DNA of 64,000 nucleotides from positions 372,001-436,000 of the forward strand of contig OX337240.1 of assembly GCA_946965045.2 (NCBI GenBank), written 5' to 3'. Under the pieces are notes generated by a model. The model did not search any database and was not told where the DNA came from. It was given only the letters and a program-made list of their open reading frames with translations. Both the position numbers and the translations under genes were made by a program. Origin of the DNA: Epithemia pelagica. Lineage: Eukaryota > Protista > Bacillariophyta. Shown piece by piece: positions 12,711-64,000 of this stretch (position 1 is its first letter; each line of letters begins with the position of its first letter).

Positions 12711-13524
12711 CTAGCCTTGAGTCATGCCAGGATATCCGAACTTGAAGCGCGCGACATTCGAATAACGACCGTTACGGTCGACGCTGAAAACCGAGTCATG
12801 TTCCACGTGTTCACCACCTTCACCACCGTCAAAAAACTGGGAATAAAAATCCGTCGTGGGACTCCCTTCCTCGGCCAAGTAGCTATCGATTATTTCCGCC
12901 ACGTGCTCATCTGTAAATAGATGATCAAGCGCGCGAGGCGGGCTCTGAGTGTGGTCGAACTCCGCCTTGTAGATATAGTTCTTTTTTCCAAGTAATTTTG
13001 GGGTTCTCATTGTCCGCGCGCTCAAGAATCTCGATTAGCTTCTCCGCGAATTCTTTCTTGAGCTGCGCGTGCGCAGTGTTATCAACCAACGGATCGTGCT
13101 CGGTAGGCGGGCACGCGACAACACATGGCCAGAAAAAAACACCTTGGTTCGGCTTGGGGGGGCCCTTCACCAACGGAAGGTTCTTTTCGCGCGACACACG
13201 ACGGTGTAGGGTCGTGATGCGCATGTCATACGATTCGAGCTCGCCTTGCGCACTATTGAGAATTTCGTCAGTGACTGGCTTCAGATATCCCGATTCTTCA
13301 ACACCCGCCTTCTGAAGCTTAAGATACCCAACAATAAACGCTCCCTTCGGACCACACTGTTCGAGGTGAACTTCCGTCACCTGTGGCCCAGCCGCAGATG
13401 CACGGACGTCCTTCACTTTCTTCTTCCCTTTCGAAGCAAATGGACTCCTCTTGCGCTTAACGGGAGTAACCACTCTGTGTGCACCCTGGGACACATCGGA
13501 TGTTTCTGTTGCGTTGGTCTGCAA
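12711..13524 (-). pseudogene. Hypothetical protein split by an apparent +1 frameshift in an A6 run (~12982-12987); probably lacks or splices a 5' exon
   Basis: ORFs 12925-13524 and 12711-13025 join as ...KITWKK/NYIYKAEFDH... if one A is removed. An acceptor-like tttttgcag lies at ~13520. Confidence 0.45.
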
Positions 13525-37369: not shown

Positions 37370-37635
37370 GGTGCGTTATTACTGTCGGTCGGAGCAAACG
37401 AACGAGACTCGCCAGCAGCAAACAGTAGTAGAGACGTCCAATTGGTGTCAATCGACTCTTTCTCTCCTCTTTTCAGACTCTTGTATTGATTCCTCTCTTG
37501 TTTTGTGAGATCCTCTTTCTTGCATTGGAAAGATACGGCATGCAACGAACCAACTACGTATCGGCATGACAATAATGAGCGACTCGTAAACATGATTGAA
37601 ATGCGACCAACGGATCCGTCTATCACCCGCGTAGT

Positions 37636-38558
37636 AAATCTACTTTAATAGCTGAGGGTGGACGAGGAGGAGCTAGGGTGTGAGGAGTGGCTCAACTCCG
37701 AGAAGGGCAATAGCGACGAGGAGTGGACTGCCCCTGTGAGATCCGCCTAAGCGGATCGAGGGGGCAGTCCACGACGAGAAGCTATTGCCCGACGAGGAGT
37801 TAAGCCACGAGGAGCGCCCTGCGACGAGGAGTCCCCCGGGGCTATTAAAGTATGTTAGCTTCCTTTGTCAGAAGGAGTCGTGCCAGCGCACGCTAGGTAA
37901 TTTTCAGTCTTCCTAAGTGATCGGCTCTCTCCTTCGATACTTAGGAGTCGAGAGCCAAATTATTTTTACACAATTTGGCTGGCCCAACTTTTGATAGGGC
38001 ACTAGGTAATCTTTGATTTTTTGTAAATAGCCATGTCACTTGAGTGGTCACATCCGAGTACATCGGATGAATAATAACGGTTTATGCCTAAGTAACATTT
38101 GTATTACATTTATGGAAGGCCAATCAAACTCCGAGGCGTGCCTCGTGTATAAATAAGACAACAGAATACTTACGAGTAGAGTCAATGAATGTCCCCGATT
38201 ACCCCCACGCCTCTTCTCTCCTTTCCCGTTCCCGACCCGAACCGACCACGACCACTGAATAAACGACACAAACACAAAAACAATGGGAAAGCTGACCAAG
38301 GTGAGTCCTCCTTCTCCGGGAGGATGGAGGATGTATCCATAATCCATCCACCAACAAAAGCTCTCCCAACTCCCAACTCACAATGATGGTGGATTGTTGC
38401 GAATTTCGAACCTCTGTCCATTGTCCATTCCTGGCCGTCTTTTGGTTCGTTTTTCGTTTCGGTGTTTGGGTGGTGCTACTTTTTGTTTCTTTTCCCGGGC
38501 TATTTTGCATGATTACACTAGAATAAAAAATCTACGTACAGTAATTTTAGGGGCTTAG
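37636..38558 (+). mobile_element. Non-autonomous relative of the Crypton-like element (right end 38558 or ~38616)
   Basis: Preceded by GTAGT (37631-37635) and starts with a rod homologous to 52188-52391. The 3' block tacactagaataaaaaatctacgtacagta matches tacactaaaataaaaaaccgagtacagta of the full element. GTAGT recurs at 38559-38563. Confidence 0.7.
37641..37852 (+). other. Rod-shaped hairpin A with periodic GA-rich internal loops
   Basis: Nested stems 37641-52/37841-52, 37687-99/37796-808, 37705-14/37781-90, 37723-34/37761-72, 37740-46/37751-57. Confidence 0.92.
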
Positions 38559-39151
38559 GTAGTGTGAGTGTGGGGAGTGACTTACTCCTCAGTGAGTCCT
38601 CAGTGATTGGGGAAGGGTAGGACGACGAGTGGTAAAGGTACCTTTTCACCGACCATGACACAAAAGATCCGCTCTCATCATATCTCTATTCTACCTAGAT
38701 AAACAGCAGCAGCACATCTTCAAAAAATGGCTCGAACGAATCAGCAGGCCATCCTCTGTAGGAAACCAATACTTCAATAGCCTGTGTGTATGGTAACGAT
38801 TTCTTTGCGAGACGGGCAAGAGTGGATCAACCATGCAAAACAACAACTACACAACGAATGCGATCGAATAAGGGATCGAACGGCAAGTTGGAAGTACGAA
38901 GCACAAAGGCAACCCTCGACAGGCCAGTCAAAGAAACCATTCCACTCCTCGTCAACACGAGTCTTTTCGCAGGAACAACCTTCCAAACATGAGTGTGTGT
39001 CTGTCTCTGGCCTTCGCCCCACACACCACACGAGCGCAACTGAAGTTCGTGGATGAAGGAATCAACGTACGCTATCCATATTCGTGTCACTCGCGCTCTT
39101 GGATTTTCAAGAAAACACCACATTGGGAATTGGCTTTAACTTATCAGAACC

Positions 39152-40567
39152 ATGAGCAGTAACGTCGAGACCAAAACGTCGGAACGGACCACCGAGTCCA
39201 ACCGCACCCCCTACGATGAAACCGAGGAATCCTCCGGCAATCCTACGATGGACAGCGACGACGACAATGTGTTGGTTGGTGTGGTCGGCAAGGCCCAAGA
39301 TCCAGAGGCTCTAAAGGAACGACGATCGACAAACTCTGTGATTTCAGACGATAGTACGGGAGAGATGAAGGAGACGCAAGGCACTGAAGACATTGGAACC
39401 GAACAAGACAATTCCTCGTCCTGTGGATTGGATCCTGCGTTGGATGAGCGTGAGAAGGAGGGGATTCTGTCAGAGTCAGACTCGGCCGCCACTGCCGAGC
39501 CGTTGGATTTGTCGGAACCCTTGGAGGAGGATAGTGTGCTGATTGACAGTGTGTCTACGACGGTACTTGATGGCGACCTAGTAGAGCAAGCCAAGACGAA
39601 GAAGACTGTGACCACGGAGGAACCTTTGTTGGAGTGGCAAGTGGTGGAGAGCCCGGTGGACGGGACAAAGGATGAGACTCAACGGCCCGCCAAGACACTC
39701 AACATGGTAGAGAAAACAGAGGAACCAGTGGTTTCCAGCCAGGGTGATGATGGTTCCTTGACTAAATGCACGGAAAACGCACTACCAGAAACTAAGACAG
39801 AGATGGACTCTCCGGATAGTTCTTTGGATCCTTTGATTGGTTGTGGTTCAGATGGCGCTGTGGCACAAACTCTTGGCACGCAACATGCCACAGTGTCTAC
39901 CGCAAGCTCCACCACCACCAAGTCGGTGCCCAAGCATGGCTTGATTCAAGGCTCCACAACCAAGTCGGCACAAGATCTTTCTGGCTTGTCCCTCTCGTAT
40001 TCCATTTCGGAGTCGGACAGTCGCTCCACGCTGGACGAATCTGCGGTTTCCGATGGATCCAGTCCTGCACTCTCCGTACTGTCCGACATCCATCAGATCC
40101 ACAAGGACTATGCCGATGAGCTGTGCCAGGCATTGGACAAGCTCAAGAGCGATATGAAAGATCAATTGCGCAAGTACAATTTGCACTTTGCTCGAGTACA
40201 TGGCAACGGACTTCCAAGCATAGCGGAAAAGCAGGCCATTCGAAACTTGTACGAAAGTTACGTGGCCTTGAAACGTCAAATCGAGTGCATCCACCAACAA
40301 AAGGATTGGTACATGACGTTGAAACCATTGTCCGATGCTCCGAGTGATGCGTTGCGTGCCGAGTCGCCGGGTCAACGCATGGAAGCTTTGCGCGTCGAGA
40401 AAAAAGAGATTCATTCCTTTTTGCGCCGGTTCGAAAAGGACTTTTACCGCAAGAACAAACGGCAAGTATCCATCTTGGCGGACATTCAACCCGTTTCCTC
40501 TCACTACAAACGGTACAAACAAATCAAGAAAGAAATGAGGGCTCTCCAAAAAGCAAAAGAAGCCTAG
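39152..40567 (+). CDS. Protein with disordered acidic N-terminus and FAM13-like C-terminal helical repeats (471 aa)
   Basis: LRVEKKEIHSFLRRFEKDFYRKNKRQVSILADIQPVSSHYKRYKQIK, plus a preceding related repeat, resembles the FAM13 C-terminal domain. Confidence 0.7.
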   Translation: MSSNVETKTSERTTESNRTPYDETEESSGNPTMDSDDDNVLVGVVGKAQDPEALKERRSTNSVISDDSTGEMKETQGTEDIGTEQDNSSSCGLDPALDEREKEGILSESDSAATAEPLDLSEPLEEDSVLIDSVSTTVLDGDLVEQAKTKKTVTTEEPLLEWQVVESPVDGTKDETQRPAKTLNMVEKTEEPVVSSQGDDGSLTKCTENALPETKTEMDSPDSSLDPLIGCGSDGAVAQTLGTQHATVSTASSTTTKSVPKHGLIQGSTTKSAQDLSGLSLSYSISESDSRSTLDESAVSDGSSPALSVLSDIHQIHKDYADELCQALDKLKSDMKDQLRKYNLHFARVHGNGLPSIAEKQAIRNLYESYVALKRQIECIHQQKDWYMTLKPLSDAPSDALRAESPGQRMEALRVEKKEIHSFLRRFEKDFYRKNKRQVSILADIQPVSSHYKRYKQIKKEMRALQKAKEA

Positions 40568-41486
40568 GGAGGCAGCAGGATTGTCGCGACAATTTTTAGA
40601 GAAGCAGTTCGGGAGGGAGCCCTATAAAAGTACTTGAATTTAGAATAAGGCAGGTGTTATGTAGAGCGGATCTTGACCATATGGTCCATTGAGAATTGAG
40701 ACCTTTCTTTCATAGAAAGAGATGAATCCTTCCGAGTTAATTCGGTAAGGTTTAGAAGACGGGCCCGTGGATAGAGATAGACATAGATATGGGACAGGAG
40801 TATGATATAGTCTATGGTCTACTGACTATCGGTCTAAGAATACGCGACCCAACATAGCGCGCGTGCCGGCTCCAACAAAGATCCGTTGAAACGAGCGTGT
40901 CATTTGGAAACAACGCAAACGAAGCAACACACACTGCCATGCAACCAAGGAAACATGATCCCGATGGAAGCGGGGAAGCAACACACCGCCTCTCTTCCAG
41001 AGCACAGAAAACGAGCATCCCACATACAAGAGTGGTCGTCGTTATGTGTCCCGACGCAATAGAGATGCTGGCAGTGAAAGGAGCGAGAGATGGTCGGGAG
41101 AGACCACCTATTACTACTATGATGGAGCGCTTCGCCGAACCGGGTCGATCGCGAGCCAAGGCGGCGGCAACTCTTCCATCTCGGAAGGACTCCGGAAAAC
41201 CTGAAATAGTGTCTTGAGGGACTGTCGTGGGAAGATTGGGACAAACGCGATCTTTTGGATCGGTTGGGTTCTTTTTCTCAAACTTTTGGGTGACACACCA
41301 CAAAAAAGATCGGGACCGAGAGAAAAAGACCCATTGATCGGTTGGAAAAGGCAAGAAGAGAGTGCTGCTTGACACGAAAAAGACGCCTTGTTTTGGTTTT
41401 TGTTGTGGTTGTGTCGATCCTCCATGTGGTCGCTGCTTTCACAGTTTGTGGGAGGGGCGGCTCCTCCTCCGGCCAACGCACCTCGA

Positions 41487-44400
41487 ATGTCCCGTAACGG
41501 GGTCGATTCCTCCTCGGAGGACGAGATGCAGGACATCAAATCCAAGAAGAAGAAGAAAAAGAAGCACAAGATAGCCGAGAGAGCAAACAAGAAGAAGAAG
41601 AAGCTGAAGCATGAGAAACACGAGGAGACGAAGAAGAAACTCAAGATTAAGAAGCAGAAGAAACGACAGAAAACGACCCATTCCTTCTCGCGTCGCGAGG
41701 AAGAAGCAAACAAGATCAACACGATATATGAATCGGAAGAAGAAGAAGAAGAAGACCCTCGAAGATCCCGAAGAAGCACAATGATGGATTATTCTACAAG
41801 TGAGAGTGACGAAATACTAAACGAAGAAGAAGATATAGTAGAAGAAGATGATGATGACCGTTCTTGCGATTCCTCCTCCTCCTATCTATCTTTCTGTTCT
41901 GAGTCTTCCAGCATGTCTGGTAGTGACGCAGAAGATGAAGGAGAAGAAGAGGACGGAACGAACAGGCGTGGCCGTAAACAAAAAGCAAAATCCAGGCCTC
42001 GAAAACCAGGAAACAAGGAATCACGAAGGATGATATCTTCCTCCTCCTCCAAGTCGCGATACTCCAAGAAACCAAAATCAGGACGTGCTCGTAGCAAGCG
42101 TGATTCCCGTGCCTCGAACCATCCGGAACGTGTCCGTGATCCTACGGGATGTCAGCCACACAGTGGGAAATCTAGTAGTATCCGGCGGCACGATTTCAAG
42201 AAACTATCCAAGCAAGATCCCGAAGGACTACGGCATGATTCGCACCACCAACACATGGATCGCAAAATGAAAGGAAACTGCAATCACCGCCATCGTTCCA
42301 AGTCGTCCCGAAACAAAACGAGTCGTTTCGCAATGTCCCCTCAGGGTCATTGCCACCAAGATGATGCAAACGGCGAGGAGACTGATGATCAAGACGATGA
42401 GGAATCGGTTGGTTCTACTACAGCAAGTCCCCTCCCCCAAGTCAAGAGCAATCGCCGTAGCCATCCGAAACAAGAGGACGATGATAATGACATTGACAAG
42501 ACCAAAACGAATCACAGCCATGCACCAAAGAAAAAGCGATCCTATCGCTTACAATTGCAATTGCTGGAACGAGAAGCCGTTTCGACACGGACACGAACCA
42601 AGCTGTGTACGTCCTCTTCTTCTGTGACAGGGTCTCCTACTCCAAGAACAACCATGTCTTCCAACCACGTTGCTGTCACACCCGAAACGGACCAAAGGAC
42701 CCCCTCGTCCCTCCTCAAGCCTCGGAAACCAACAGCGGCTCCAGCCAAGTTACCAGCCGTGACTTCCTCGCCCTACCGTTCTAGTCGGAAACGAGGCCAT
42801 GTCGAAGAAGAAGACAATACTGACAAAAGTGAAGAAGAGGAGGCGGAGGAAGAAGAGGCTCACGAGGAGGAAAGTTCCAGTGAAGAAGAAGAAGAGGAAG
42901 ATGATAATGAGGAGGAGGAAGAAGAATCTAGTGAAGAGGAGAATCTTGATTCCAAAGAAGTTCGGGTGAAACAAGAAGAAGAAGAAGAAGAAGAAGAACA
43001 AGACGGTGAGGAGGAAAACGAAGAGTCCTCTTTGGCGGAGAACCCAGATACGAACGTAGTGGCTATGGGCAGTGCATCGGAATCCAGTGAAAATGAGAAT
43101 TCTGATGGTGAATCTAATACGATGACTTCGTCTGATGAAGACGAAGACGTTATGGCATATGAACAAAAACTACGCCATGGCTGTCCTCCAATCCGGGAAA
43201 AGACCAACCAGAAATCAATTGTGAAGCGAGACCATAGTTTTTTCGAGACTATGGGTGGTATGCGTGATGGATCCGAGGTTGTGTTGCACCGTCCGTTGAA
43301 CAAATGTAAGACATTTATTCATCTCGCTGGATTCTTTGCTCTTTCCTTTCTCGTCTCATTTTTGTCTTTTGTGTCAATCGGACAGATTCTCAAGCACTTG
43401 GTCGCGTGTACTTCCGATCTTGCACCGTGTCTGGAAAGGAATTCACCGTGGGATCCAAAGTCATGTTGAACGAAGCTCCTTTGGACTGTGTCTTGATCAC
43501 ATCTCTTTTTCAAGCTACCAAATCCTTTCAAGGCTATTACGCTTCAAAGAGAAACACGTACTCCCAACAGGGTTCCAAGTCCAGCCAAGGCCCCCAACGA
43601 CGGGAACTGCAAAAACGGGGACACGTCTACATGACAGTTCGTGCAATTATTTACAAGCAAAAAGGTGGGAATGGGAACAAACGATTCTCGTTACGCAAGA
43701 CGAAGGAAGCGGACTCGGTCGATGTGCCTGTGTGGTTGAATGAGCCCGGGCTCTACATGGTACACATGCCGGACACCATGGAAGTTCAAGGTCTTGCTCT
43801 TGCGGAACAAAAAGATATACAACAGTTGGGAGTCAAGGATCCTGGTTGGCCCATATGGGCCAATGCACGACAAGTCCACTACATTTCGCAAAAAAATGAA
43901 ACCATCCGTTGGTGGCCTAGCTCCAAGAAAAGCCGACTTACAAGTCAAGAGTCGAAGCGAGATAGCATTCGATACAGGTATGATTCATCGCAATGACGAG
44001 ATTGACTAGCTATGGATTGCACTGTTTGTTGATAACTTCTTTGTCTTGTTTCATCATCTCTCCAGGTTGACATACTCCTCCTCCGACGATTCCGATGGAT
44101 TGGACTCGGAATCAAAGCACTTGGTTAAATTTAATGAGAAACGAAGACGACAACATCCCGAGATGCCCAATGAAAGTGAGAATGACGATAGCGAAAACGA
44201 CACTATGAGATCTGATGTGGAAAACAGTGACGAAGACAGCGGTGATCAGGACAACCCTAGTTCCAAACGCCGTAACGACAAGAGCGGCAAACCAGCGACC
44301 AATGACGCAATGGAATGCGACAAACTATCGAGTGACGAGTCGGAAACGACGATTGTGGATAACATAGTGAACTATCGAACTCACCGTTTGGTTCTTGACG

Positions 44401-47400
44401 CGGATTGGCCAGAGGAATCAGACATAGCCCTTCAAGACGAATCGGAACGATCCAGAGGCCTCATTATGCTGGAGCCCTTTAAGAAGGCGTTTCCCGATCT
44501 TCGAGCAGAAATTGAAAAGGCCGTGTTTAGTCCACAGCAGCATGTAGAGTGTGAATACGTCGATTCCGTGTCCAGCTGGTCTACGACGACGGTGGATATC
44601 CAGATACAAACGAAACTCAATGCAGCAAAGACGACATTGGGCATAGCCAAGCTCCATCCGCTGCAAGAACGAGTCTGTGCGCACATAATAAAAAATCAGC
44701 TGGAAGACGTTGTTGTCAACGCTCCTTGTGGCTCTGGCAAGGTACGTTCGTTGTGATCTTACACCGTTTTGCCTTGTCTTGGTATCTCACTGTTCACTGG
44801 CTTGTTATAGAGCATGTGTTTTATGGTTCCCGCTGTCTTATTTGGAGGTATCACACTTGTTGTCGAGCCACTTAGAGCCTTGATTGACAGCTTATTCCGC
44901 GAATTACGGAAACGCAACATTAACTGTGAAAAACTCCTTAGCAACGAAGCAGCAGGACATAGTCAAGCTCTGAGCGCGTATAACCGTTTATGTACTTTAT
45001 TGGATGAAAGATTGGACGGCAAACCACTCGTCATTCTTACCACACCAGAACTTGTTTGCACGGGCGGTACAATGGAAATCCTGGGTAATCTACAAGAACA
45101 GGGAAAATTGCGAAGAGTTGTTGTGGATGAGTTCGATTTATGGTACGTGAATTTAATTGATTTAAGTTCGGCTTGTGTCACAACTTCTCCGTACACAAGG
45201 ATTACTCATATGGTTGTTTACTGGAACTTGTGGAATACCTCAGTATCGAACCAAAGGAGAAGGAAGGGACTTGTCACCGACCAGCTTTTGCCGAAATTGT
45301 TCCTCATATTCGCAGAGTGCTGACAAGGACACCAGTGTGAGTATCAAAAGTTGAATGTACTTGCGAGTATGAAAGAAGCCCTCAATTTGATCTCCTTATC
45401 CAATGCACTCGCTCTGTTGGATCTCTTGTCCCCAGAATGTTTCTATCTGCCACGGCCTCCAACAGTGCCGTGAAACTCGTGTCATGGAGCCCCTCAGGGC
45501 AAAAGAAGCCAAAGTTGTTTCTTCACAGCAATCCGCTTCCGCATAATCATTTCTATCGTGTAGAGTCAAGGTCTATGACATGGACCGATGTTGCTGCAAG
45601 AATTGCCAAGATTCTGTCTGATTATGCCCGGGAACATCCAGAAGGTCCTCAGGCAAAGGCTCTTTGTTTCTTCGTTGGTCGAGCAATCGTGGGAACCTTT
45701 AGTGATTTATTGAACGAAAAGAAAATCACCTCTCTTGCTTATGTTGGGGCAGAGACAGAGAAACAAAAGCAACGAAACAACACAATCCTTCGGGAGTTTA
45801 AGGAGACTGATGTACAGGTTTTGTGTGCAAATTTAGCTCTGGGCCGAGGAGTAGATGATCTCCCAAAGAATATCCGATTTTGTTTTCATGTCCAAATGCC
45901 AGAATCTCTTCGTAAGTGCGTGCATAAGCGCCGTTTCCTCTCCGGTATAATTGAGGTTCTCATGTTCTGGCAGCTGAATATTTGCAACAGACAGGCAGAG
46001 CAGGCCGTGACGGTGGAGCGACTTTCTGCTACATGTTCTACCGTTCCGCTGACCGAAGTCGCATTGAGAATATTCTGGGTGGTAGGAGAAAAGAATTAAG
46101 TCACTATCAGCGCAGAGCTCTGGACCTAGTCAGGGAATATGCAATAAATGGGACAATGTGCCGTAAAGAAGCCCTGGCAAAATGCGCATTCGTTGGTGAG
46201 CCAACGCATGTTCGTTGTACGCATCCAGGGAAAATTCGGTGCGATAACTGTCTTGCCAGTGATTGTGTTTTTTCAAAGCCGAAAGACACTGGATGGCTCT
46301 TGGATGTAACAACCAGTATTCACAGTTTTCTTCTGAGAGCCAAATCGAAGTTTATGGTGAAAAATGACTTGAGGGAACAAGACCTACGGAAAGAATCCAG
46401 TGCGTGGCATTGCATCGCGCGAAATATTGAAGAGTTGTCTCCCGATCTTCAGGATAAGAAGTTCCTTCAATCGCTAGTTTCCGGGGGCCTAGATTTTAGC
46501 CTTCTCCATGACTTGGTCCGGTATATGAATGATGTATGTGTTCGGAGTGCCACAAACAAGACTCGCTCCGGACTAATTGATCATATTCGATCGAAGAGGA
46601 GTATCAAACGTTTTCTGTTTCAAGCATCACTTCCGCTAGAAAGCTTCAGTCAAGACAGGGTTCCGATATGTGTCTCACCGATTAAAGAAAACCGCGAAGA
46701 CGTACTCGAAATCGTTGGAAAGAGACAAATTTCAATATTGCTTCAGTACTTTCTCCAGAAAGGGATCGAAACATGGAACCGCAATACTAATAGCACGATC
46801 TTTGATCGTTCACTCGATCGGGAATATAGCATTGGCGAAACCTGCGAGGATGGCAATGATGCTGACGCCAATGCATTCAAAGCAGCTCTGCACTTCGTCT
46901 CAAAGGATCCACGCCTCAAGTCTCTGGACCTTACGAAACTCTATGATGCCCACAAACACGGTTGCGGTTTGTACTGGTCCGCCTCTGTCGAAAAGGATGG
47001 ATCTCTCAACATCTGTCATCCGGAGATAGCATGGGATCGTCGTATGTATCGTAAGTTTGGAGCCGACCGGTTCTTGACGGTACGCGTCAATAAGCAAGTG
47101 AATATCCAACAAATAAAGGAGCTTTTTGATGGCGATGGCATATCCAAGGGACACAAGGCACTTCTCTTTGGCCGGACATATCGTTATCTGTGGTGTAAAA
47201 AAGAAAAAGATCCACAGCAGTTTGTTCTGTTTGCGGAAGAGGGCCCAGGCTTATCCCCAACCTCAGTGTCTGACGTCCTGAATTGGGCAATACCTCATGA
47301 TTTAAATGGTTCGCTATCCATTGCGAAGCGATTAAAGAGGATGAAACTTTGGTTTTCTACGACCATACCGACCGCATGTTTACCGGCTGGAAGTGTACGG

Positions 47401-47415
47401 ATTGTTCCTGACTAC
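41487..47415 (+). CDS. RecQ helicase-RdRP fusion gene, 5' part (exons 41487-43305, 43386-43977, 44066-44741, 44811-45142, 45244-45336, 45436-45911, 45974-47415)
   Basis: RecQ motifs APCGSGK|SMCFMVPA, VVEPLRAL, TTPE, VVDEFD, LSATA, LALGRGVD, QQTGRAGRDG, and Zn-binding CRK...CDNC. These lead into an RdRP N-terminal region (RKFGADRFL, KRMKLWFSTT). All junctions are GT-AG and in phase. Confidence 0.85.
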
Positions 47416-48204
47416 CATTGGTCCTCGGGAGGGATGTAGGATCCCTGCACGTGCCTATTTACTATAGCCCATTTTGTACTGTACTCGGTTTTTTATTTTA
47501 GTGTACGTATGTATTTTAGCGGTCGTGGGAAATTCCGAGCGTAAAACCAGGGTCACAAAATGGATCGAAACGCAACCAATACAACAACGAGAGAAACCGT
47601 AGTGCATGAACCAATGAACCAAGGAACAAACGACCATGACAATCAAACAAGCGAGGCAACAAGCACAACAGCGAGCAAAAGCAACCAACAATCAACCAAA
47701 AAGGACAACCAAGGCAATACAATCAACAAACATCAAAGAAGCAGCATGGTAGAACAGCAGCGAGCGAAAAACATAAAGCATCAAGAGAGACAAGCAAAGC
47801 ATCAAACAACGAAACCAAAAGCGATACAACAATCAACCAAGACAAATGACAAAGCAACAATCAAACAAAGGCAAAAACCCACGCAATAAGCCAACAAAGG
47901 CAAGAAACAACAATAGAAACAGAGACGACGAAAATGAAACAAACATCAATCCAACAAACACAGAAACATAACCAACAACCAAACAGAAAGAACAACAGAG
48001 CAGACCGAGAGAAAAGAGAAGCAAGACAAAGGTTAGAGATGCATTGATAATGGAAATGGATGCAACAATCAAAAAGAGCAAAGACAACACTTACGTATTG
48101 AAGCGATCTACACGCAGAGCTCAAGCAACAATCTGCAATGAAAAGGAAGCAGTGAGAACATAGAAAAGACAAGACAACAATCAAACACAGAAAACTTACC
48201 TAGT

Positions 48205-51200
48205 TCAGTAGTATCGTCCACCATGGTGGTTGTGATTGTAGTGATCACCACCATGGTGGCGACTGTGGTGACGAGGATAGTAGGACTCGGAGCGGTGGTG
48301 GTGGTATGAGGAACTGTATTTGGGAGGAGGGGGCGAAGGGTGGAAGTGCTCCACTCGTTGACGGTACACTGCCTCCCCAATCAGACGAGAAGATGGAGGA
48401 GGTGGTGGCGGAGGCGTGTACGAGCGTGGAGGTGGAGGTGGAGGGGTCTGTCCACGAGGAGGATAGTAGTTGTTGCGTGTGGGAGGAGGAGGTGGACTCC
48501 AGTTCACCATTGCCCCATTTCCATTGTTATAGGAAGGCGGAGGAGGGGGAGAACGACGTTGTGATTGGGCGTAGTGGTTGTTGCGTTGGTCGTAATGGCC
48601 CTGATGGCTGCTTTCCAATGATCCGTGGTGGTGGTTGCTGTGATTGTGTTGGTCTTGATGGCCGAGGTGGCCACTCTCCCACGATCCATGGTTGTTGTTG
48701 TTGTGGTGGCGGGGGCGTTCGTCGTAGTACGACGAATGGCTGTTGTTGTTGTTGTGGTGGTGGTAGTGGCTATCGTCGTATGGTGGTCGACGATGGTTGT
48801 TGTTGTTGCTGTTGTTTTGACACTCGTAGTGGGGAGGTCGGCCACTGTTATTGTTGTTGTCGTTGTAGTTTTGGAACTCGTAGGGCGGTCGGCCGTTGTT
48901 GTTGTTGTTGTTCTCGTAGGGAGGTCGGCCATTGTTGCGAGTGTTGTTGTTGTTGCTCTCGTAGGGTGGTGCTCCATTCTTGTTGCTCTCGTAGGGTGGT
49001 CTGCCAGTGTTGTTGCTCTCGTATGGTGGTCGGCCATTGTTGTTGTTGTTGTTGTTGTTGGAGTTGTGAGAGTTGTTGTTGTTTTGGTTGCCACCATCCC
49101 CGTCGCCCCAATCAAAGCCTAGCGGAGAGAACGATGGAGACGAATCGTTGGCACCACCACCAGCAGTAGGAGCATCGGACGAATGATTCGGCGCTACGAT
49201 CAGAAAAGAATGACAGAAAGGTGAGAGACTGATTTCGAATGAACAACAATCAGACAACAAACTTACGCGACGACTTCTTCGGCTGTTCCACTTTGTCTTC
49301 TGGGGGGATGTACCAGTTTGCCGTCGAAGCCTTTAACTTCGACGCGGTAGAGACTTCTTGGTACTCATAATTAATCTCGGCCGATTTATGACGGCCAAAA
49401 TTCGTTGCCAAGACTTGTGGCACTCCGCAATTCGCCACTTTAGAGATGCCCGTTCTACGAGCAGTTCGACCGGTGAAGTTTCCATCTTCGGGGAACTTGC
49501 ATCGAGCAGCCAGCACCTTTGTGTTGTTCGCCGCGAAGTTGCTGCCGAGTTTGCCACCAGGACGCATACCCGTGGCCGGGTCGAACTTTTCTTGGGCACG
49601 GTCCTTCACCAGGTCAGTCCAACCCAAGTGTTTGGACCCACATTTTCGGGCCGCGATGATTTTCTTTGGGGCTTCGTACAAAAACAAGAGTCCCTTCCAG
49701 CCCGGCGGATGCGCTACCTTTCGGTAGTGCATAAATAGCTTATACGTACTCCACGGGTCTGCTTCGTTTTCTATGATCATGTTGGACAGCGAGTCATTCT
49801 CGCGGCGAAACGTAGGCTTGGCTAGCGTCAATTTTACGTTCTTGTGGTGGCCAGCATCAAGTGGGATGATTGCTGGCTTGCCCGCATGTTCTCCGTACGA
49901 CTCATCTAAACGAGCTACGAATCGAAAGTCAGTAATCCTTGCTAAATGAATCTGAATAGAAGTAGCAAGAACATCAGTAGAGGTGAGAAAACCAGTAAGA
50001 AAGCCCAACAATCAACCGTTTGGGTACGTACCTCTAAACAGCGAAAGCTAATATCGCGACAGAGCGAGTAGAAGAATAGCATTAGCAAGTCTTTGAAGAC
50101 TTGGAACGGATTCAAGGGAGGATCTGCGAGGTTGCGGATGTGATACTGATCATCCATACACACGCTGGCCCGTTTCGGCAAGCGACCGAACTCGGGACGT
50201 GCTTTCGCCGTCTTTTTCCAAATCCATTCTAAATACGCTTGGTACGAACCTCTGCCCTTGAGGTCCGTTTGCCCGATGCACACGCCGTTGGCACGCAGGC
50301 AAGCAAACAGATGATTCAATACCTTCCCAGTCGTGTTGGGTTGGTAATGAAACTTTGGATCGTGGGGATCATCGCGCCCCTTGACATACCCCGCCATCCG
50401 AAGATTCATGCAGAAGATAGCTAGCAAGGAGTTAAGTAGCCCCAACTTTCTTGGCGTCTTCGCCCCGCGTAGAGCAACGAACAACTTGGGGACTTTCAGT
50501 CCATCTGATCGTTCAGGGTCGACCATTAGCTTCGCGAGTCCTCGGTAGTGTCGGTGTCGACGAAGCACATCTAAGAAACGCTGGACCGACTCTTGTTTTT
50601 CCTTCGAGTACGACTCGGAGCAGCCAGCAAGCTCGCGAACATCATAGCCATGATACTCGTCCGCAAATACTTCATCGCTGAGTTCAGCGAACTGACCGAA
50701 GTATTCCAACAGGTTGTCGTCATGTGGTTCATCAAGTGGCAGAGTCTTGTATTCGGCGATTGAGATCTCGCCTTGCTCGTTCTCTTCGAGATGGCGTTGC
50801 TCCACCATTGCACGAGCAATGGTCTTCGTATCTAGTGGAGACGGAGGAGGAGGAGGGGCACGCCGAGCAAGAACACCACGTGCACGGGCATTTCGGCGGC
50901 TTCGAACGGAAACAGAAGGAACAAAATCTTCGTCCGCTTCAAGATCATCCATTTCCATTCCTTCAAAGATACTGTCATCATCGTCCGAACCGTCATCAAG
51001 GAACGGATTCGTTTGATTGTTCCTGTGGAAAGCAAAGGAAGAATGTAAGAGGGTGGAAGATGCAACAATCAAATAGAGCGACAACGCAACAACGAACTCA
51101 ACAACGAACGCAACAACAACGAAACTTACTTTGAACGGTGGCGTCGACGGTGAAGAAGAGGAGGAAGATCATCGGGAGGCGGTGGGTTGTTCTCCTTGTC

Positions 51201-51395
51201 GGCTTCCGACGGAGGAGGTGGACGAGGAGGTGGATTCTTCTTCTTCGGTTTTTGCTTCTTGTTCTTGTTGGTCATTCGGCGAGCGACCTTTCGGACGGGG
51301 GAGGACGAAGTTGCAGTTGGTGATTTGCTGCTGGCTGCAGCCAGTTGCCGTTTGGAGCGGCGAGTTGGCTGTTGCGAGGGAGGACTGTTGGCCAT
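48205..51395 (-). CDS. Tyrosine recombinase, Crypton/DUF3504-like (exons 51395-51130, 51022-50032, 49951-49267, 49193-48205; ~976 aa)
   Basis: YQPNT; box I DISFRCLE|IHLARITDF; box II FTGRTARRTGIS; GRHKSAEINYEY (H...Y). Three phase-compatible GT-AG introns and a N/P/H/Y-rich C-terminal tail. Confidence 0.82.
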
Positions 51396-52187
51396 GGTCA
51401 AGAACTTCCTGTCGTTGTTGTCGAAATGGCAAAAGTATGAGAAATGACAGGAAATGGAAGGATTTGAGTGACCATTGGAGGGCAGGCGCGCAGGAAGAGG
51501 ACGAAATTGGAAGAAAGGAAGACTTTCCACCATGGGAATGACGAAAAAGGACGAAACAACAATCAACTTACATTCTGTCGCACCGCTCAAGGAACCAAGG
51601 ATCGGAATGCAAGCTATGGAGATCAACATCTCCTTTGCATTCGTCGATCCTTGGTTCCCAGGTCCCATGGTACCTGTCGACCGTTGGGTCGACCGGTACG
51701 AAGACCATGGACGAGGGGTCTTCCCAAGGATCATAATTTGTCGACAACGTCGACATCGAAGACGAAGAAGACGACGACGACGATGCAAGAGAGATGGGAG
51801 ACGCTGCGGTGCCACGATGGGATGCGGAGCGGGGCATGGGGCTGACAATGGGACGGCTCGTCATGGTGGCAACCCAACAATCAAATGGATGAGGAAACCA
51901 CGACGACGATAACAACGACAACAGCGCCTACAACGATGCCTCCCACAATTTCAAACAGGTCCCTATGTAGCACCTAAGTATTTAGTTCGTCCCTAAATAG
52001 TGAGACCCTATGTGATCTTGTGTTCCTAAATAGTGAGAACCTAAGTGTCGTAAGTAATTTCCCCCAATATGTGACTACTTAGACTAAGTAGAGTGACGAG
52101 TTAAAAAAATCAACGGACGATAAGCCTAACAAAATATAAATCCTATGTGACACTTACATCCCCCCTCGGACGCAACGGAAGCGTACA

Positions 52188-52391
52188 ACATCTGCTCCTC
52201 GTCGTGATTCTCGTCGGGGGCACTTCTCGGGGGCCTAACTCCTCGGCGGGCAATAGGTCCTCGTCGTGTACTGCCCCAAATCCGCTTATAGCGGATTTGT
52301 TGGGCAGTACACTCCTCGGACCTATTGCCCTTCTCGGAGTTAGGCACCCCTCGTCGTGCCCACTCCTCGGATCACTCCTCGGAGCAGATGT
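52188..52391 (-). other. Rod-shaped hairpin B at the 5' end of the YR element
   Basis: Seven nested stems (e.g. 52188-98/52381-91, 52248-60/52318-30, 52266-76/52302-12, 52277-86/52290-99). Five 5x5 loops separate them and read GAGGA/GACGA-type on the minus strand. Confidence 0.93.
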
Positions 52392-52399
52392 AGAACTAC

Positions 52400-54642
52400 T
52401 ACAACCTTTGTGACAACTTTTCGGAAATTGATGGTTGTGGCTTGATATCCCAAGATGCATTGCATGTAGTATGGGATTGTTACCGCGCGAAGACTTCTGA
52501 GAAACGGTCTGATTCATGCATATGTCCGCACACAGGGTTTCAAGGCCGTCTTGGGGGTTTCAAAGGCACCTGGGTTCTGGACCGTGCTTTGGGAACTGGT
52601 ATCGTGGTTCATTGCAGAACAAGTCAGCACAAGTTTCAAGTTCCACAATCCTGTCTGCAGTCGACATCAAACAGAGCTGACTCGATGGAAGGAAAGGTTA
52701 CAGAAGACGACCACAGTGTATTTGAAGTGTCGTCTTGGGACAAGGATCCAACGCCAGCCAAATTGAACGTTCGGTTGATCCAACTGCTAGAACACTATGG
52801 TGCTTCTTGGGAATTCTTCGAGGAGAACTGTTTGGAACCAGCAATAAAGGATTTAGAAGAAATGATGGGATCTGGTCCAGAATCGAAAAGAGCGTGGTTG
52901 AAACATTTGAAAGAGAGACAACGTTCGAATGTACTGAAATCATGGACCGACAGCAGAAAATGCCTGAAACTGTTGTGCGCAAATGTGGCTACGTCCGACC
53001 CGGAGCTCTGTCGATTCAAGAAAAAGCTCGTGTCTGAAATGTTCCGCTCCCTTCAAAGCAAAGCACATTACCCTCTATCTGGCTGTGTTTATCTTCGAAT
53101 GTATGGTGATCACACATTGCTGCTGGAAGAAGGCGAGGCGTTTGTGGCATGCAATGGCGTTCGGACCGGGCTTGACGCTTTATCCGAAGAGATACTTGCC
53201 ATGAGGTCGCCGTCGTATTTTGGGGGAGACATGAGACGACTGTCTTTGGTGTCATTGGATGAGTTGAAGAAGCGATCAAGAGATCCCGAACATGCAAAAC
53301 GTTTTCCTTCTGGATTGCGTAGTGAGCTGGTGCGATCCGGTCAAGAAGCAGTAGAGTTTTTTGCTTGTGAGTAAAAGAAGGTAACGAAGGATTAACGGCG
53401 TGTCCTTTCATGTTCAGTCGTGTCGCTAATTGGTCTTTCTTTCAGGTCTTAAAAACTGCATTGTGTTGTGTAATAAGGGAAAACGGAGCGAGGCAGATCG
53501 AATGTCTGGTGGCGACTACGATGGAGACCTTGCATGGGTATGTTGGAACCAGAAACTCATGGAATCCTTGACACAAACCAAGATTGCTGCCGAGGACATT
53601 TGTGATATAGTGGATAACCCCCTAGAACTGGGGAAACGATCTGCATGGGACCCGGACAATCAGGTGCATGAACTTGATTATGCTCGAAAGTTTAAAATGC
53701 ATCATGTCACACTGGGCAAGCTGTCCAATGCGTTGGACGCTGCGATTGACCAATTTGGCTTTGGATCTCCTCAGGCACAAACGTTAGGTCGCGCACTATT
53801 TCTACAAGTGGATGTTCCAGACACGCGTAAGTCAAGCTTGGCTTGGTTTCTAGTCGAAGTTTCGAGTCGTTGCTTATCCATCTGGTTTTCGTTTTTTGCT
53901 CACAGCACTATTGCGACAAGAAGAAGAAGCGACCCTGCTTGAATCGATCAAGACTCCTCATTGGGCGCTCAAGGACAGGTTCTCGTCTCACCGAAGCTAC
54001 AAATCCAACAAAATGCTGGGCACTTTGTTTGATGCGTTGAAGAACCGCATGGAATTGGCCATGTCTGGATCAGAAAGTGTCGACGGAGAAATGAAGTTGG
54101 ATCCCCTCATTTCAAAACTTGTGGACCCGTATCGGGGCAACCAGGAGTGGCGGCAACTCGAGATGCGAATGAGAACGGCCGTGGAACTCTATATTACAGA
54201 AAAGGCAAAATATTGGGAAAACCGTTCTGTTGGCAGTCACGACAGGATCGTTGCGGATGCGTCCTTTGGCAACAACAAGAACGACCAAGAGAAGGAACAA
54301 GCCGCCGAAGAAGGACGCCGCCACTATGAGACATGGAAGCTCGAGTACTTTACCCGGGCACGCACAGAGTTGGGAAGAGGCGAGGAATCTCGCAATCAAA
54401 CGCAGCTTTGGGAAGTCAAGCCCCAGGTATGGGGGGCCACACTGTACATGGTGGGTTGGGAATGTCATCAGGAATGGACACACAAGCGTCAAGAGACGAG
54501 TCATGGCGTCCAACACAAACATGCCGGTGGTCCCATGGAATTCGTTTGGGGCGTTGCCGAAGGAGAACTATTAAAGGACGTGTTCTACACCAAGAGTTTG
54601 ATTGTTGCCGAGGAAGTGGAAGCTCTTGTCCTTGGTATTTAA
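52400..54642 (+). CDS. RecQ-RdRP fusion gene, 3' part: eukaryotic RNA-dependent RNA polymerase catalytic domain (exons 52400-53366, 53446-53826, 53906-54642)
   Basis: DGCGLIS, FQGRLGGFKGTW, RTSQHKF, RSPSYFGGD, NCIV and catalytic SGGDYDGD. Confidence 0.92.
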
Positions 54643-54949
54643 AAGAGACTCCATGCCAATTGTGGATTGTGAATGATAACAGAAAGATTCGAAAAGGTAG
54701 TTTATTTGTTGACATGACTTCATTTGTGTATAAGATACGTCCATCCACAAGCTCATCTCCTTGGTGGCCGCTACATACTTTTTGTTGTGGCGAGAACCGG
54801 GCAACAGGATGTACATGTGTGTGTGTGTGTGATCCTATTCGCGTTCCAACGTCCAAAGCGCCACACGTTTCGGCCATGTACATACACACCGCCTCTCTCT
54901 TTCTCTCTCTAGTCTGGCCACACCGACACGAATCACACAAGACTGTAGA

Positions 54950-62030: not shown

Positions 62031-63815
62031 GTCTTGTCACCGACAAGAATCCCAAAAGTCTCTAGGAAGGAATCGATCGAGACGGCATCTCAACACATTG
62101 TGTCGCTTGTTCTTGTATGGAAGCCACATGAAAGGGCCGGTTCGTGACTCCTCATCTTGGATCATAACACATACAGCACGATCCTTTCTCTCGCAAAACA
62201 CAAGTGTGTGGACCCTCCCTCTAGTAAGAAGCGCGCGACATCCAGAGCAGTACTTCACGCCAAAGTCTCACCTGCTCCTCTTGAACCGTTGGATCCATTC
62301 TTTTCATGTTGTGATCTTTGGCGGTTGCACCAGAGCAACAGCACAAGTCGTTGGAAGTCATTCCACTACGAGAGCCCCATACTATACGAGGTCCTTGACT
62401 CGATCATCCGTATCATCATGTCGGAAGCATGGTGGCATCGGGCCTGGAAGTGGTGGACCAAGGGATCCGGTGCCCCTGACACCACAACCGAACCGGATCC
62501 AAACCAGGACCTGCACCAGCCACCACCATCCGTGGCTGCTGCTTCGTTGTCGTCTTGTGCTTCTCAATCACACCCATCGAAACGACGACGACGAACTCCG
62601 CAAGAACCACCCACGGACGGTACCGAGCCGCCACACAACGAGCCAGGATGCTGGTCCCCGCACCAACCACCAGGACCCCAAGATCCGGAAGGACAGTGCA
62701 CTCACGACGACGACAACAACAACCAGGCGGATCGGAATCACGTCTGGTTTCAGAGCCTTGATCGAGAAGCTCCGACTATCCAAAAAGATTCGTATCATGA
62801 TTCGGCGAGGAATCATCATCCCACTCGAGGAGGAGTGGCCCGGTTGGTCTCTCCCTCCTCCCATCCAGAAGAGGACGAGGATGGTGCTGGGAGTACGAGA
62901 GTCGAGAAGCCTGCCGCATCATCCACCCATGGCAACAAGCAGAAGAAGAGGGAAAAGCAGATGGTGCAGCGCCGGAAACGCATCGCCACTGCCAAGCAGC
63001 AAACGGCCACCAAGAAGAGAAAGAGCAAGCGCCGCATCCTGGAAGATACCTCCTCCTCCTCCGAAGACGACGACGACGATGGTCCAAGAAGAACGAACCG
63101 GCCTCCTCGCAAAAAGCAGTGCCGTTCATCGTCCCACGAAAAAAGCATCAAAAAGAAGAAGGACCCAGAAACGCCGAAACCATCCAGTCCTCACAAGGCC
63201 ACCCGAACCAGAACTACCGCACAAAAATGCAAAGAAGACGACGATGATGACGACGACGAAGACATCACCTCAGCCACTCGTCGATCGAGCCTCCGGTTGC
63301 AACGCATGTTTGATGCACGGCGTCGTTACGCACGGCGACAGGGAACCCTTGCTCCTGCCAAACCCAAGACCGACTCCATTTCCCGCTCGGAACCACACGG
63401 CACGATCAGCGGCAGCCCACGAGCCACTCGGAACCATCGAACCAAGGAATCGAACCATGACGACGACAAGATGGCGTTGCCCCCGAACCTGTCCTTGCAA
63501 CAGCCGTTGCGCAAGAATACGAGTACGTGTCAACCTTGGAGCACTATAAGTTTGGCGTTTGCACAAATACGTTTTCTGACCCCTCGTTGTGTGATTGTTG
63601 ATTGTGTTGCGACCAGATGCGCAACGGCTCGGTCGTTGCTATTATCGGAGCTTGGTGTGGTCGGGGACCGAGTTTTCGGTGGGTTCCGTTGTCCTTTGGA
63701 AGACTTCCCCCCAGAAAGACCACAGGAGTCCGTGTTGGACCGTATTGATTACCGGCATTTTTCAAGCGACACTCTCGGTGCGGGGAGTTGCCTACCACCA
63801 CTCGGAGGACAATGA
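62031..63815 (+). CDS. Unknown gene X, longest copy (conserved N-terminal block plus basic/acidic disordered tail); in-frame TGA at 62145-47 suggests it may also be defective
   Basis: 552-codon ORF in the frame conserved among the three copies. An acceptor-like (ct)n..ttcacag lies at ~62030. Confidence 0.45.
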
Positions 63816-64000
63816 CGACGAGGGTGATTCACCTCAAAGGAAACGTTTGCAACAAAAAGGCCGCGTCTATGCCTTGGTTCGTCAGGTGCGCTTTCGACAG
63901 GTACGCGATGGCATTCGAGCCTACAGCTTGCACCGAGCCGATGGAAGCGATTGCTTGGTGCCCTTTCCCAAGAAGCAGCAGCAGCAATGCCCGTTGGATC

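Follow-up and report, generated by a model that had tools for sequence, protein, structure and literature searches.

The window, i.e., the whole 64,000-nt stretch of DNA that was analysed, carries a nuclear diatom gene that is confirmed to be expressed and to encode one protein of about 2,500 residues, in which a RecQ-type helicase is joined to a QDE-1-like RNA-dependent RNA polymerase (RdRP). The order along the protein is a charged N-terminus, a beta-rich domain, a divergent RecQ helicase with its Zn subdomain, a helical linker, the RdRP and a C-terminal tail. The features of the locus are as follows, with the evidence for each in brackets.

41424–43305, + strand: exon 1, charged low-complexity N-terminal region of ~600 aa, rich in K, E and S (ORF, translation)
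43386–43974, + strand: exon 2, conserved beta-rich "mid" domain, aa 608–802 (conservation among relatives)
44063–44739, + strand: exon 3, acidic linker followed by motif 0 of RecQ (LGIAKLHPLQ) and the greater part of Walker A, NAPCGSGK/S (X4 splice junctions, RecQ alignment)
44809–45141, + strand: exon 4, motifs Ia (VVEPLRALI), Ib (TTPE) and II (VVVDEFD) (Pfam DEAD 24.4 bits; TIGR00614 positions 40–135; alignment)
45243–45336, + strand: exon 5, 94 nt, degenerate counterpart of the RecQ aromatic-rich loop (X4 joints 45141>45243 and 45336>45436; alignment)
45436–45911, + strand: exon 6, motifs III (SATAS), IV and V (ALGRGVD) (Pfam Helicase_C 21 bits; TIGR00614 positions 168–306; alignment)
45974–47415, + strand: exon 7 left, RecQ motif VI, Zn cysteines, helical linker and RdRP start (Pfam in one ORF; one X4 block)
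47416–52402, no strand assigned: insertion, 4,987 bp (blastn against L001, junction sequences)
52403–53366, + strand: exon 7 right, RdRP core including DGCGLIS (Pfam RdRP 106 bits, profile positions 168–411)
53446–53826, + strand: exon 8, RdRP catalytic loop SGGDYDGDLAWVCW, DYDGD at 53514–53528 (Pfam RdRP 73 bits; QDE-1 alignment; motif search)
53906–54642, + strand: exon 9, C-terminal region kept in Epithemia, stop codon 54640–54642 (tblastn with P0003 residues 2181–2427; ORF model)

Gene model, fusion point and alleles

With the insertion excised, the nine exons form an ORF of 7,512 nt, i.e., 2,503 aa and the stop, with no internal stops; in this model exon 1 is counted from 41487 (41487–43305), 45974–47415 is joined to 52403–53366 as exon 7, and the other exons are as listed. 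The stop-free frame of the original prediction was thereby retained, its total of 7,515 nt and 2504 aa differing trivially. The start codon is uncertain, because ACG replaces the ATG at 41487 in the other allele, both alleles having an in-frame ATG at 41424. Contigs of the public RNA run X4 cover 41674–43051 of exon 1 unspliced, and a 6,055-nt contig of the same run (record 27) covers 43022–47415 with six GT..AG introns spliced out, by which the first six introns are confirmed; the last two are supported by canonical GTGAGT/GTAAGT..CAG sites and by collinearity with the Epithemia orthologue. The long contig goes 2,160 nt past 47415 without entering the insert, a length equal to the remaining CDS and ~78 nt of UTR, and therefore fits an mRNA ending about 78 nt after the stop. 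Instead of separate helicase and RdRP transcripts, a single spliced contig spanning both modules was found, in agreement with the predicted single gene.

The exon at 45974–47415 is the physical fusion point of helicase and polymerase. Its + strand open segment (45955–47436) includes, stop-free between them, motif VI QQTGRAGRDG (45994–46014), Pfam RecQ_Zn_bind (aa 23–91, with the Zn cysteines at about 46156–46251) and Pfam RdRP (aa 346–477, from about 47017), the latter amounting to the first ~150 profile positions; the best PDB matches are BLM, RECQ5 and WRN. The Zn region and the RdRP N-terminal region do lie in one exon and one frame, as had been predicted, and DGCGLIS and DYDGD follow at aa 1820–1826 and 2155–2159. 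Of the motifs I–VI that had been assigned to this exon together with the Zn region, motif VI belongs here, while motifs 0–V are located in exons 3–6.

The insertion is flanked by a direct ACTAC repeat, has multi-copy ends and is missing from the second haplotype of the same assembly (L001, by blastn), where the CDS of 7,509 nt is insert-free and intact. In the DNA runs, read depth at 47300–47499 exceeds that of the adjacent bin 7- to 33-fold, the RNA run leaving the sequence past 47415 uncovered, and no match to the ORFs of the insertion was found in Pfam or PDB. The insertion is a multi-copy 5-kb mobile element inside exon 7 and not an intron, and the window copy is a disrupted allele. This copy is unable to make the polymerase, because the gene frame stops at 47434–47436, 7 codons into the insertion; judging from its reading frame, it could make only the helicase part with a polymerase stub. 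The product of the other allele, P0151, reads uninterrupted through the 47415/52403 junction. Between the alleles, 26 of the first 121 residues are different, and beyond the N-terminus there are 10 differences per about 1,900 aa; of the 13 exon differences, 8 are silent.

Helicase, polymerase and accessory domains

The helicase is, by sequence, clearly RecQ-derived and not of the Dicer/DExD type, in accordance with the original prediction. For the orthologue, BLM was matched at E 1e-36 over 450 residues versus 2e-8 for DEAD-box proteins, TIGR00614 was the best family for each member and each window exon, and the helicase profile matched BLM/Sgs1 in a large protein collection at about 1e-95. 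Motifs I, Ia, II, III, IV, V and VI occur in the RecQ order, and GSGKS, VVEPLRALI, DE.., SATAS, ALGRGVD and QQTGRAGRDG can be aligned with BLM/Sgs1 column by column. The motif 0 glutamine is kept (LGIAKLHPLQ in the window, with LH for FR, and LGISAFRQLQ in Epithemia, versus FGLxxFRxNQ in BLM), and the Zn-binding cysteines CR..C..CDNC are invariant in alignments A1 and A3; the Pfam RecQ_Zn_bind match of the window (E 8e-4, 20.5 bits) is below the 25-bit cut-off, and that of P0063 reaches 27.8 bits. No full-length member has lost Walker A, the DE of motif II, motif VI, the Zn cysteines or DxDGD.

The divergence from canonical RecQ proteins concerns several positions. Motif II is DEFD, not DExH/DEAH, in all six diatom-clade members, DE[A/C]H being kept in P0091, P0179, P0063 (Picozoa group), P0221 and P0190; motif III of the diatom members has SAT instead of TAT, and the aromatic-rich loop between motifs II and III (..SQWGHDFRPDY..) is replaced by ..IEPKEKEGTCHRPAFAE.., with only R..(Y/F) kept. 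The TIGR00614 scores of Epithemia (186.8 bits), Corethron (194.3) and P0012 (208.6) are all below the curated cut-off of 219.8, which the Picozoa relative P0091 passes with 262 bits. No Pfam match to the RQC winged helix or HRDC, which not every RecQ subfamily has, was obtained in the window protein or its relatives, and the AF2 model of aa 1346–1640 is helical (pLDDT 60), with no Foldseek matches. Since DEFD stands for DExH and the RecQ aromatic-rich loop is absent, DNA unwinding is less secure than originally assumed, and in its classical RecQ form is not assured for the diatom members.

The polymerase was recognised by Pfam RdRP (PF05183, the two-barrel polymerases) in three collinear pieces of 41, 106 and 73 bits (cut-off 23.8) that span profile positions 10–533 (ranges 10–152, 168–411 and 410–533), the two downstream pieces being at 52442–53371 and 53430–53939; the orthologues score 238–265 bits across positions 4–582. 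Alignment A1 shows no variation in the catalytic D.DGD, which the paralogue described below also has. The closest solved structure is QDE-1 (5fsw, 3.5e-12; 2j7n, 1.5e-11) versus 5e-4 for Arabidopsis RDR2, so that match scores support a eukaryotic RdRP nearer to QDE-1 than to the plant-type RDRs.

The mid domain had no Pfam match; it is kept in Epithemia, P0008, P0012, the paralogue and the gene at 63.6 kb. Its AF2 model has a pLDDT of 53 with Foldseek matches at E 0.4 or weaker, and BAH domains made up 16 of its 21 top VIA matches, at Z of only 3.5–5.0, by which the domain is possibly BAH-like. Together with the SET domain borne by the relative P0179, these matches are hints of a chromatin link.

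Relatives and known helicase-polymerase systems

Full-length fused relatives were found in Epithemia (2,429 and 2,434 aa) and in Corethron MMETSP transcripts (about 2,000 aa), together with P0012, P0318 and P0008, and further with P0091 of Picozoa, P0063, P0179, P0190 and P0221, all from Epithemia, Corethron, Picozoa and marine metagenomes. The sequences are public and bear automatic names only. A paralogue on the same contig (L002) has Helicase_C, the Zn region and RdRP in a single 3-kb exon. Centric as well as pennate diatoms have the whole architecture, and the helicase-polymerase core is retained also in Picozoa and unidentified marine protists. The earlier interpretation as a Rosetta-stone fusion is strengthened by the paralogue, by Picozoa and by the conservation of fused genes across six or more lineages less than 50% identical. 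In the literature, no paper describing a RecQ-RdRP fusion, or this gene in diatoms, was found.

In Neurospora, QDE-1 makes RNA and dsRNA from ssDNA, its preferred template, and interacts with RPA in dependence on the RecQ helicase QDE-3, which is said to belong to the BLM/Sgs1 branch (PMC2950127). The diatom gene resembles this quelling/qiRNA module in combining a RecQ-family helicase, likewise nearest to BLM/Sgs1, with a QDE-1-type polymerase, the SGGDYDGD(L/M)AWV loop being found in both. However, QDE-3 and QDE-1 are two proteins, whereas the diatom has one polypeptide, with DEFD, a degenerate aromatic loop, no detectable RQC winged helix/HRDC and an extra N-terminal conserved domain. The likeness to BLM/Sgs1/RecQ (TIGR00614, recQ_fam) includes the motif 0–VI order, the zinc cysteines and the best matches in PDB, NCBIfam and the large protein collection, from which the diatom members are set apart by the same features of the helicase, by scores below the cut-off and by the C-terminal RdRP.

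Helicase-RdRP fusions are known in Dictyostelium (RrpA/B/C), peronosporomycete oomycetes, Hydra and Nematostella (PMC4791657, PMC3661229), where one protein likewise has an SF2 helicase on its N-terminal side and a eukaryotic RdRP on its C-terminal side. Their helicase is Dicer/RIG-I-like (YQxE..NTIVxLPTGxGKT, DE[A/C/V]HH, LxLTASP) and aligns with Dicer (PMC4791657, supplementary file 5), whereas the diatom GSGKS, motif 0 glutamine, QQTGRAGRDG and Zn cysteines align with RecQ; the helicases are of different families, and therefore these fusions and that of the diatom are independent. The RDR of Phaeodactylum tricornutum (Pt2_45417) is referred to as the "putative RdRP" in work on diatom silencing (PMC2724275). 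By eye, its first ~400 residues, as given in the PMC4791657 supplement, include LGRVYYKSF, SIFQATRSYVG and IQKRSHCYF, the counterparts of which in the window mid domain are LGRVYFRSC, SLFQATKSFQG and LQKRGHVYM. Its loop is apparently NGDLDGD, not GGDYDGD, again by eye, in a text fragment of the published RdRP alignment attributed to it by file position, and no helicase is listed for it in PMC4791657.

Possible role of the fusion protein and alternatives

The RecQ-RdRP fusion gene itself is real, and we consider it somewhat better than an even chance that its protein acts like the Neurospora QDE-3/QDE-1 pair in one polypeptide, with an inferred function in DNA-linked silencing. Recruitment to chromatin would be through the N-terminal domain and nuclear-type basic tracts; there, at repeats, transgenes or damaged DNA, single-stranded DNA (or an RNA:DNA hybrid) would be opened or held by the RecQ-derived ATPase. 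From this strand the polymerase would make aberrant RNA and then dsRNA, and the latter would feed the diatom Dicer-like and Argonaute proteins. It is possible that separate proteins arise via an internal start or proteolysis.

A real fusion may instead have a helicase acting on RNA and not on DNA, which would strip or remodel the nascent dsRNA or RNA:DNA product and let the polymerase reinitiate as an RNA-templated amplifier, a rather unlikely reading that nevertheless deserves weight. The diatom DEFD..SAT for the RecQ DEAH..TATA resembles the DEAD-box arrangement, the aromatic-rich loop is lost, and RdRPs have helicase partners elsewhere, such as Hrr1 in the RDRC of S. pombe and DRH-3 of C. 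elegans. The Dictyostelium Rrp proteins likewise provide their RdRP with a helicase partner, and non-RecQ helicase-RdRP fusions arose independently in other lineages (PMC4791657), which suggests that RdRPs in general need a helicase. However, this reading is opposed by the RecQ derivation of the domain, its intact zinc subdomain, the DE[A/C]H of the Picozoa-type relatives and the closeness of the polymerase to the ssDNA-preferring QDE-1 (PMC2950127), and DNA or chromatin is suggested by accessory domains of the chromatin type (BAH-like; SET in P0179). An improbable alternative is a function in DNA repair, replication or recombination instead of small-RNA silencing, e.g., by RNA synthesis at breaks or stalled forks with RecQ-type processing. 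RecQ helicases are genome-maintenance enzymes, and the closest helicase matches are BLM and Sgs1; however, to our knowledge, the cellular RdRPs of the PF05183-type family are known only from RNA-silencing pathways. According to the background in PMC2950127 and the abstract of PMC4358405, the same Neurospora pair makes DNA-damage-induced small RNAs, and this reading overlaps with the QDE-3/QDE-1-like one because such RNAs are themselves a silencing output.

That the fusion is an artefact or a dead gene, by mis-assembly, read-through of two neighbouring genes or pseudogenisation, is effectively refuted. The window copy is indeed broken by the 5-kb insert and lacks coding for the catalytic part of the polymerase, but the helicase/RdRP junction is inside one exon and spanned by a spliced contig, two haplotypes and the paralogue agree, the same ORF runs uninterrupted in independent transcriptomes and genomes from other species, and the alleles differ at few residues outside the N-terminus, most of the exon differences being silent.

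As an extension of the QDE-3/QDE-1-like reading, it is conceivable, though we hold it on the doubtful side, that diatoms, Picozoa and other marine protists have an old self-contained "DNA-to-dsRNA" enzyme, a single chain that combines a RecQ-derived motor and a QDE-1-type polymerase with a module that reads chromatin (BAH-like; in a relative, SET). Acting directly on genomic DNA, with no Pol II transcript needed, this enzyme would initiate small-RNA silencing of repeats and transposons. If so, the quelling-type synthesis of aberrant RNA would be an ancestral pathway of eukaryotes instead of a peculiarity of fungi. The recruitment of a silencing polymerase to DNA loci and the source of "aberrant RNA" are settled only in Neurospora, with QDE-3, RPA and QDE-1 as separate proteins; the natural fusion of both enzyme types, conserved across distant lineages, is independent genomic evidence for one machine, and it offers a single polypeptide for biochemical reconstitution. 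Silencing in diatoms is a widely used tool of obscure mechanism, for which the fusion protein is a candidate initiator, and the mid/N-terminal domain common to the P. tricornutum RDR may give an experimental entry point in a model species. Moreover, a mobile element has knocked out one allele of a presumed genome-defence gene, which constitutes a natural heterozygous loss-of-function.

Exons, introns and the spliced transcript

A chain of open segments runs along the plus strand at 41.4-54.7 kb of the window, with the Pfam domains in the order from helicase to RNA-dependent RNA polymerase (RdRP).

Open segments with Pfam matches in the window
44814-45320, plus strand, DEAD
45437-46096, plus strand, Helicase_C
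45982-47436, plus strand, RecQ_Zn_bind and RdRP
52442-53371, plus strand, RdRP
53430-53939, plus strand, RdRP

The two modules meet in the open segment 45955-47436, which is in one frame with no stop and carries YLQQTGRAGRDG (RecQ motif VI), the zinc-binding cysteines, a linker of ~250 residues and the RdRP profile positions 10-152, its closest solved relatives by sequence being BLM, RECQ5 and WRN. The three polymerase pieces occupy collinear stretches of the RdRP profile (positions 10-152, 168-411 and 410-533) and, therefore, belong to a single polymerase domain interrupted by ~5 kb of foreign sequence.

A 6,055-nt contig of the public sequencing run X4 lies on 43022-43305, 43386-43974, 44063-44739, 44809-45141, 45243-45336, 45436-45911 and 45974-47415, leaving out six GT..AG introns of 62-101 nt each, and is thus of spliced RNA origin; none of the runs listed as containing this stretch is recorded as an RNA run. 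The contig match ends exactly at 47415, and the further 2,160 nt that follow are not the sequence of the insert; the depth of X4 in the bin 47300-47499 represents cover up to 47415 only. Two further introns have canonical sites, namely GTGAGT at 53367 to CAG at 53445 and GTAAGT at 53827 to CAG at 53905, and with them the remaining coding sequence past 47415 comes to 2,082 nt, with the stop codon at 54640-54642; the length of the contig is compatible with an mRNA end ~78 nt past this stop. A blind listing of GT..AG pairs left too many solutions to choose from, and the introns were placed instead by transcript contigs and orthologue-guided mapping. The resulting model of 7,512 nt (2,503 aa), with no internal stop, essentially reproduces the size of 7,515 nt (2504 aa) given in the original prediction. 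The start codon is uncertain, because the ATG at 41487 reads ACG in the other allele, while an in-frame ATG at 41424 is common to both. The SNP phasing of the transcript gave no allele assignment, since the contigs are haplotype mosaics and carry 2 of the 13 variants of the insert-free type, one being the variant closest to the junction.

Two alleles, with and without the insert

The other haplotype, represented by the DNA locus L001, carries the gene without the insert. In the DNA comparison, the window positions 38639-47415 match L001 2475-11260 with 97.3% identity and 52398-54780 align to L001 11256-13643, so that the two matches adjoin with an overlap of 5 nt in L001 and define the insert as 47416-52402 (4,987 bp), bordered on each side by the direct repeat ACTAC. 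At the protein level, P0151, the 744-aa ORF product of this allele (contig ctg1362l, ENA assembly ERZ21939226), aligns with 46156-47418 and, directly after it, with 52400-53371, at 99% identity. The insert-free allele has an intact coding sequence of 7,509 nt with identical splice sites, while in the window allele the frame stops 7 codons inside the insert, the helicase being retained and everything from the motif DGCGLIS on being lost, including the catalytic DYDGD. The original prediction of one gene with a RecQ helicase and an RdRP has been confirmed by the one-frame junction exon, the spliced contig and this intact allele.

The removal of the insert as an intron is unlikely, as its boundaries offer no GT/AG pair and the nearest pair adds 11 nt; moreover, the other haplotype carries the empty site in its DNA, and the cover of the RNA run ends at 47415. 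In the DNA runs, the insert has multi-copy ends: the summed depth of the bin 47300-47499 reaches 7 to 33 times the value of the bin next to it. No Pfam match was obtained for the four ORFs of the insert on the minus strand and one on the plus strand, and a PDB search with one of the minus-strand ORFs was likewise negative. The exon that hosts the insert belongs to a gene presumed to serve genome defence.

Past the low-complexity N-terminus, only 10 of ~1,900 residues differ between the alleles, and of the 13 differences in exons 8 are silent. The insertion appears to be a recent event, and apart from it the gene is constrained. The first ~120 codons (window 41487-41850 against L001 5338-5700) differ at 26 positions, the ATG/ACG at 41487 among them, which is far above the rest of the gene, so that this part may be a 5' UTR or barely constrained. 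About 1 kb of the window upstream (37623-38638) is missing from the other haplotype, in which the sequence runs on directly at 2475/2476 of L001.

Helicase and polymerase types

The helicase had been predicted as RecQ-type rather than Dicer/DExD-type, and this assignment held: the core of the Epithemia protein matches BLM with E 1e-36 over 450 residues, followed by RECQ5, RECQ1, bacterial RecQ and WRN, whereas DEAD-box proteins match it from 2e-8 at best, and the top NCBIfam model is TIGR00614 (recQ_fam) for every orthologue and each helicase exon of the window, with collinear profile positions. The scores of the diatom proteins (187-209 bits) are below the curated 219.8, against 262 for the Picozoa-type protein. 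The alignment contains motif 0 with its glutamine, Walker A GSGKS, motifs Ia and Ib, SATAS, ALGRGVD, QQTGRAGRDG and the zinc cysteines CR..C..CDNC. The diatom members all have DEFD in place of DEAH as motif II and a degenerate aromatic-rich loop, while DE[A/C]H is retained in the relatives P0091 (from Picozoa), P0179, P0063, P0221 and P0190. Neither an RQC winged helix nor an HRDC domain was detected, and the model of the linker between the zinc region and the RdRP has a pLDDT of 60 and no structural match. With these two RecQ hallmarks missing and RQC and HRDC undetected, the helicase is, judged by its motifs, RecQ-derived and not a typical RecQ, and such altered motifs mean that it may have an RNA-directed role.

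The polymerase is closest by sequence to the solved structures of QDE-1 from Thielavia (3.5e-12) and Neurospora (1.5e-11), compared with 5e-4 for Arabidopsis RDR2, and its catalytic loop is nearly identical to that of QDE-1: SGGDYDGDLAWVSW in the Epithemia query and SGGDYDGDLAWVCW in the window against SGGDYDGDMAWVCW. Every full-length fused protein that was checked has the pattern D.DGD, as does the paralogue.

Distribution of the fusion and comparison with known systems

The exhaustive search with the junction exon as the query found 213 relatives. Full-length relatives that combine both modules include two Epithemia clementina proteins (2,429 and 2,434 aa), the Corethron hystrix MMETSP transcripts (1,988-2,062 aa, UniRef name 'DNA 3'-5' helicase'), P0012 (2,248 aa, on a 6,765-nt contig), P0318 and P0008, and, beyond diatoms, a 1,413-aa protein from a cluster including Picozoa single-cell genomes, P0063, P0179, P0190 and P0221. 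The Epithemia protein is collinear with the window over 43113-54636. Word-based protein searches with it returned almost nothing except itself, since the collection searched stores most diatom genes as ORF fragments, and the informative searches were the exhaustive and the profile ones; the ESM Atlas feature search gave weak RecQ-family leads only, with scores up to 0.83. A paralogue on the same contig as the window gene (L002 7465-14094, contig ctg1339l; 40-57% identity) has the module order mid domain, RecQ, RdRP, with fewer introns, one 3-kb exon containing Helicase_C, the zinc region and most of the RdRP, and an intact DYDGD at nt 13006. A quick maximum-likelihood tree was built for the helicase module. 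A branch with SH-aLRT 95 sets 9 of the 11 fused proteins apart from the BLM/Sgs1-type helicases, and one short unfused fragment groups with these fused proteins; with BLM-like outgroups only, a single origin of the fusion is no more than suggested.

Fusions of a helicase with an RdRP have been published for Dictyostelium, peronosporomycete oomycetes, Hydra and Nematostella (PMC4791657; PMC3661229). Their helicases align with those of Dicer, showing YQxE..NTIVxLPTGxGKT, DE[A/C/V]HH and LTASP (PMC4791657 supplement), whereas the diatom fusion has the RecQ pattern, and the present architecture is thus an independent fusion involving another helicase family. The QDE-1 of Neurospora acts as both a DNA- and an RNA-dependent RNA polymerase, converting ssDNA into dsRNA, and the RecQ helicase QDE-3 is needed for the interaction of QDE-1 with RPA (PMC2950127). 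The original prediction had read the fusion as a Rosetta stone; as an architecture this is well supported by the fused relatives and the paralogue, while the coupling of helicase and polymerase, by analogy with Neurospora, would be a plausible mechanism. Both the fusion of a helicase to an RdRP and the partnership of RecQ with QDE-1 are known, but their combination in one protein appears to be undescribed: no description of a RecQ-RdRP fusion was found in the full-text literature searches, whose coverage did not extend to Burroughs et al. 2014 (PMC4066877), and the diatom papers covered name 'putative RdRPs' only. The string GRAGR is absent from the supplementary sequences of PMC4791657, which cover only the first ~400 residues and are, therefore, uninformative on the RecQ module.

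The conserved mid domain (aa 608-802) is common to Epithemia, P0008, P0012, the paralogue and a gene starting at 63.6 kb of the window. Its motifs recur at the N-terminal end of the P. tricornutum RDR (PhatRDR) presented in supplementary file 7 of PMC4791657, as LGRVYYKSF and SIFQATRSYVG against LGRVYFRSC and SLFQATKSFQG in the protein of the window gene, which links the family to a model diatom; in the RdRP alignment fragment of that supplement, the catalytic loop of this RDR, read by eye, is apparently DLDGD. The model of the mid domain is poor (pLDDT 53), and BAH domains make up 16 of its top 21 matches in the exhaustive structural comparison, with Z of 3.5-5.0, which is too low to prove a fold. 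P0179, a 2,167-aa protein from a JGI metagenome contig, has SET at aa 69-195, followed by RecQ (1023-1342) and RdRP (1693-2136), which would place a predicted histone-methyltransferase-type domain in a RecQ-RdRP chain. The BAH resemblance and this SET domain hint faintly at chromatin.

The gene starting at 63.6 kb is represented in the window by 63622-63942, with 34% identity to the Epithemia residues 528-640. P0320 of Podospora australis (1,699 aa) has an RdRP listed together with the Upf1-like SF1 helicase domains PF13086 and PF13087, and would represent a third type of helicase-RdRP fusion, independent of the others.
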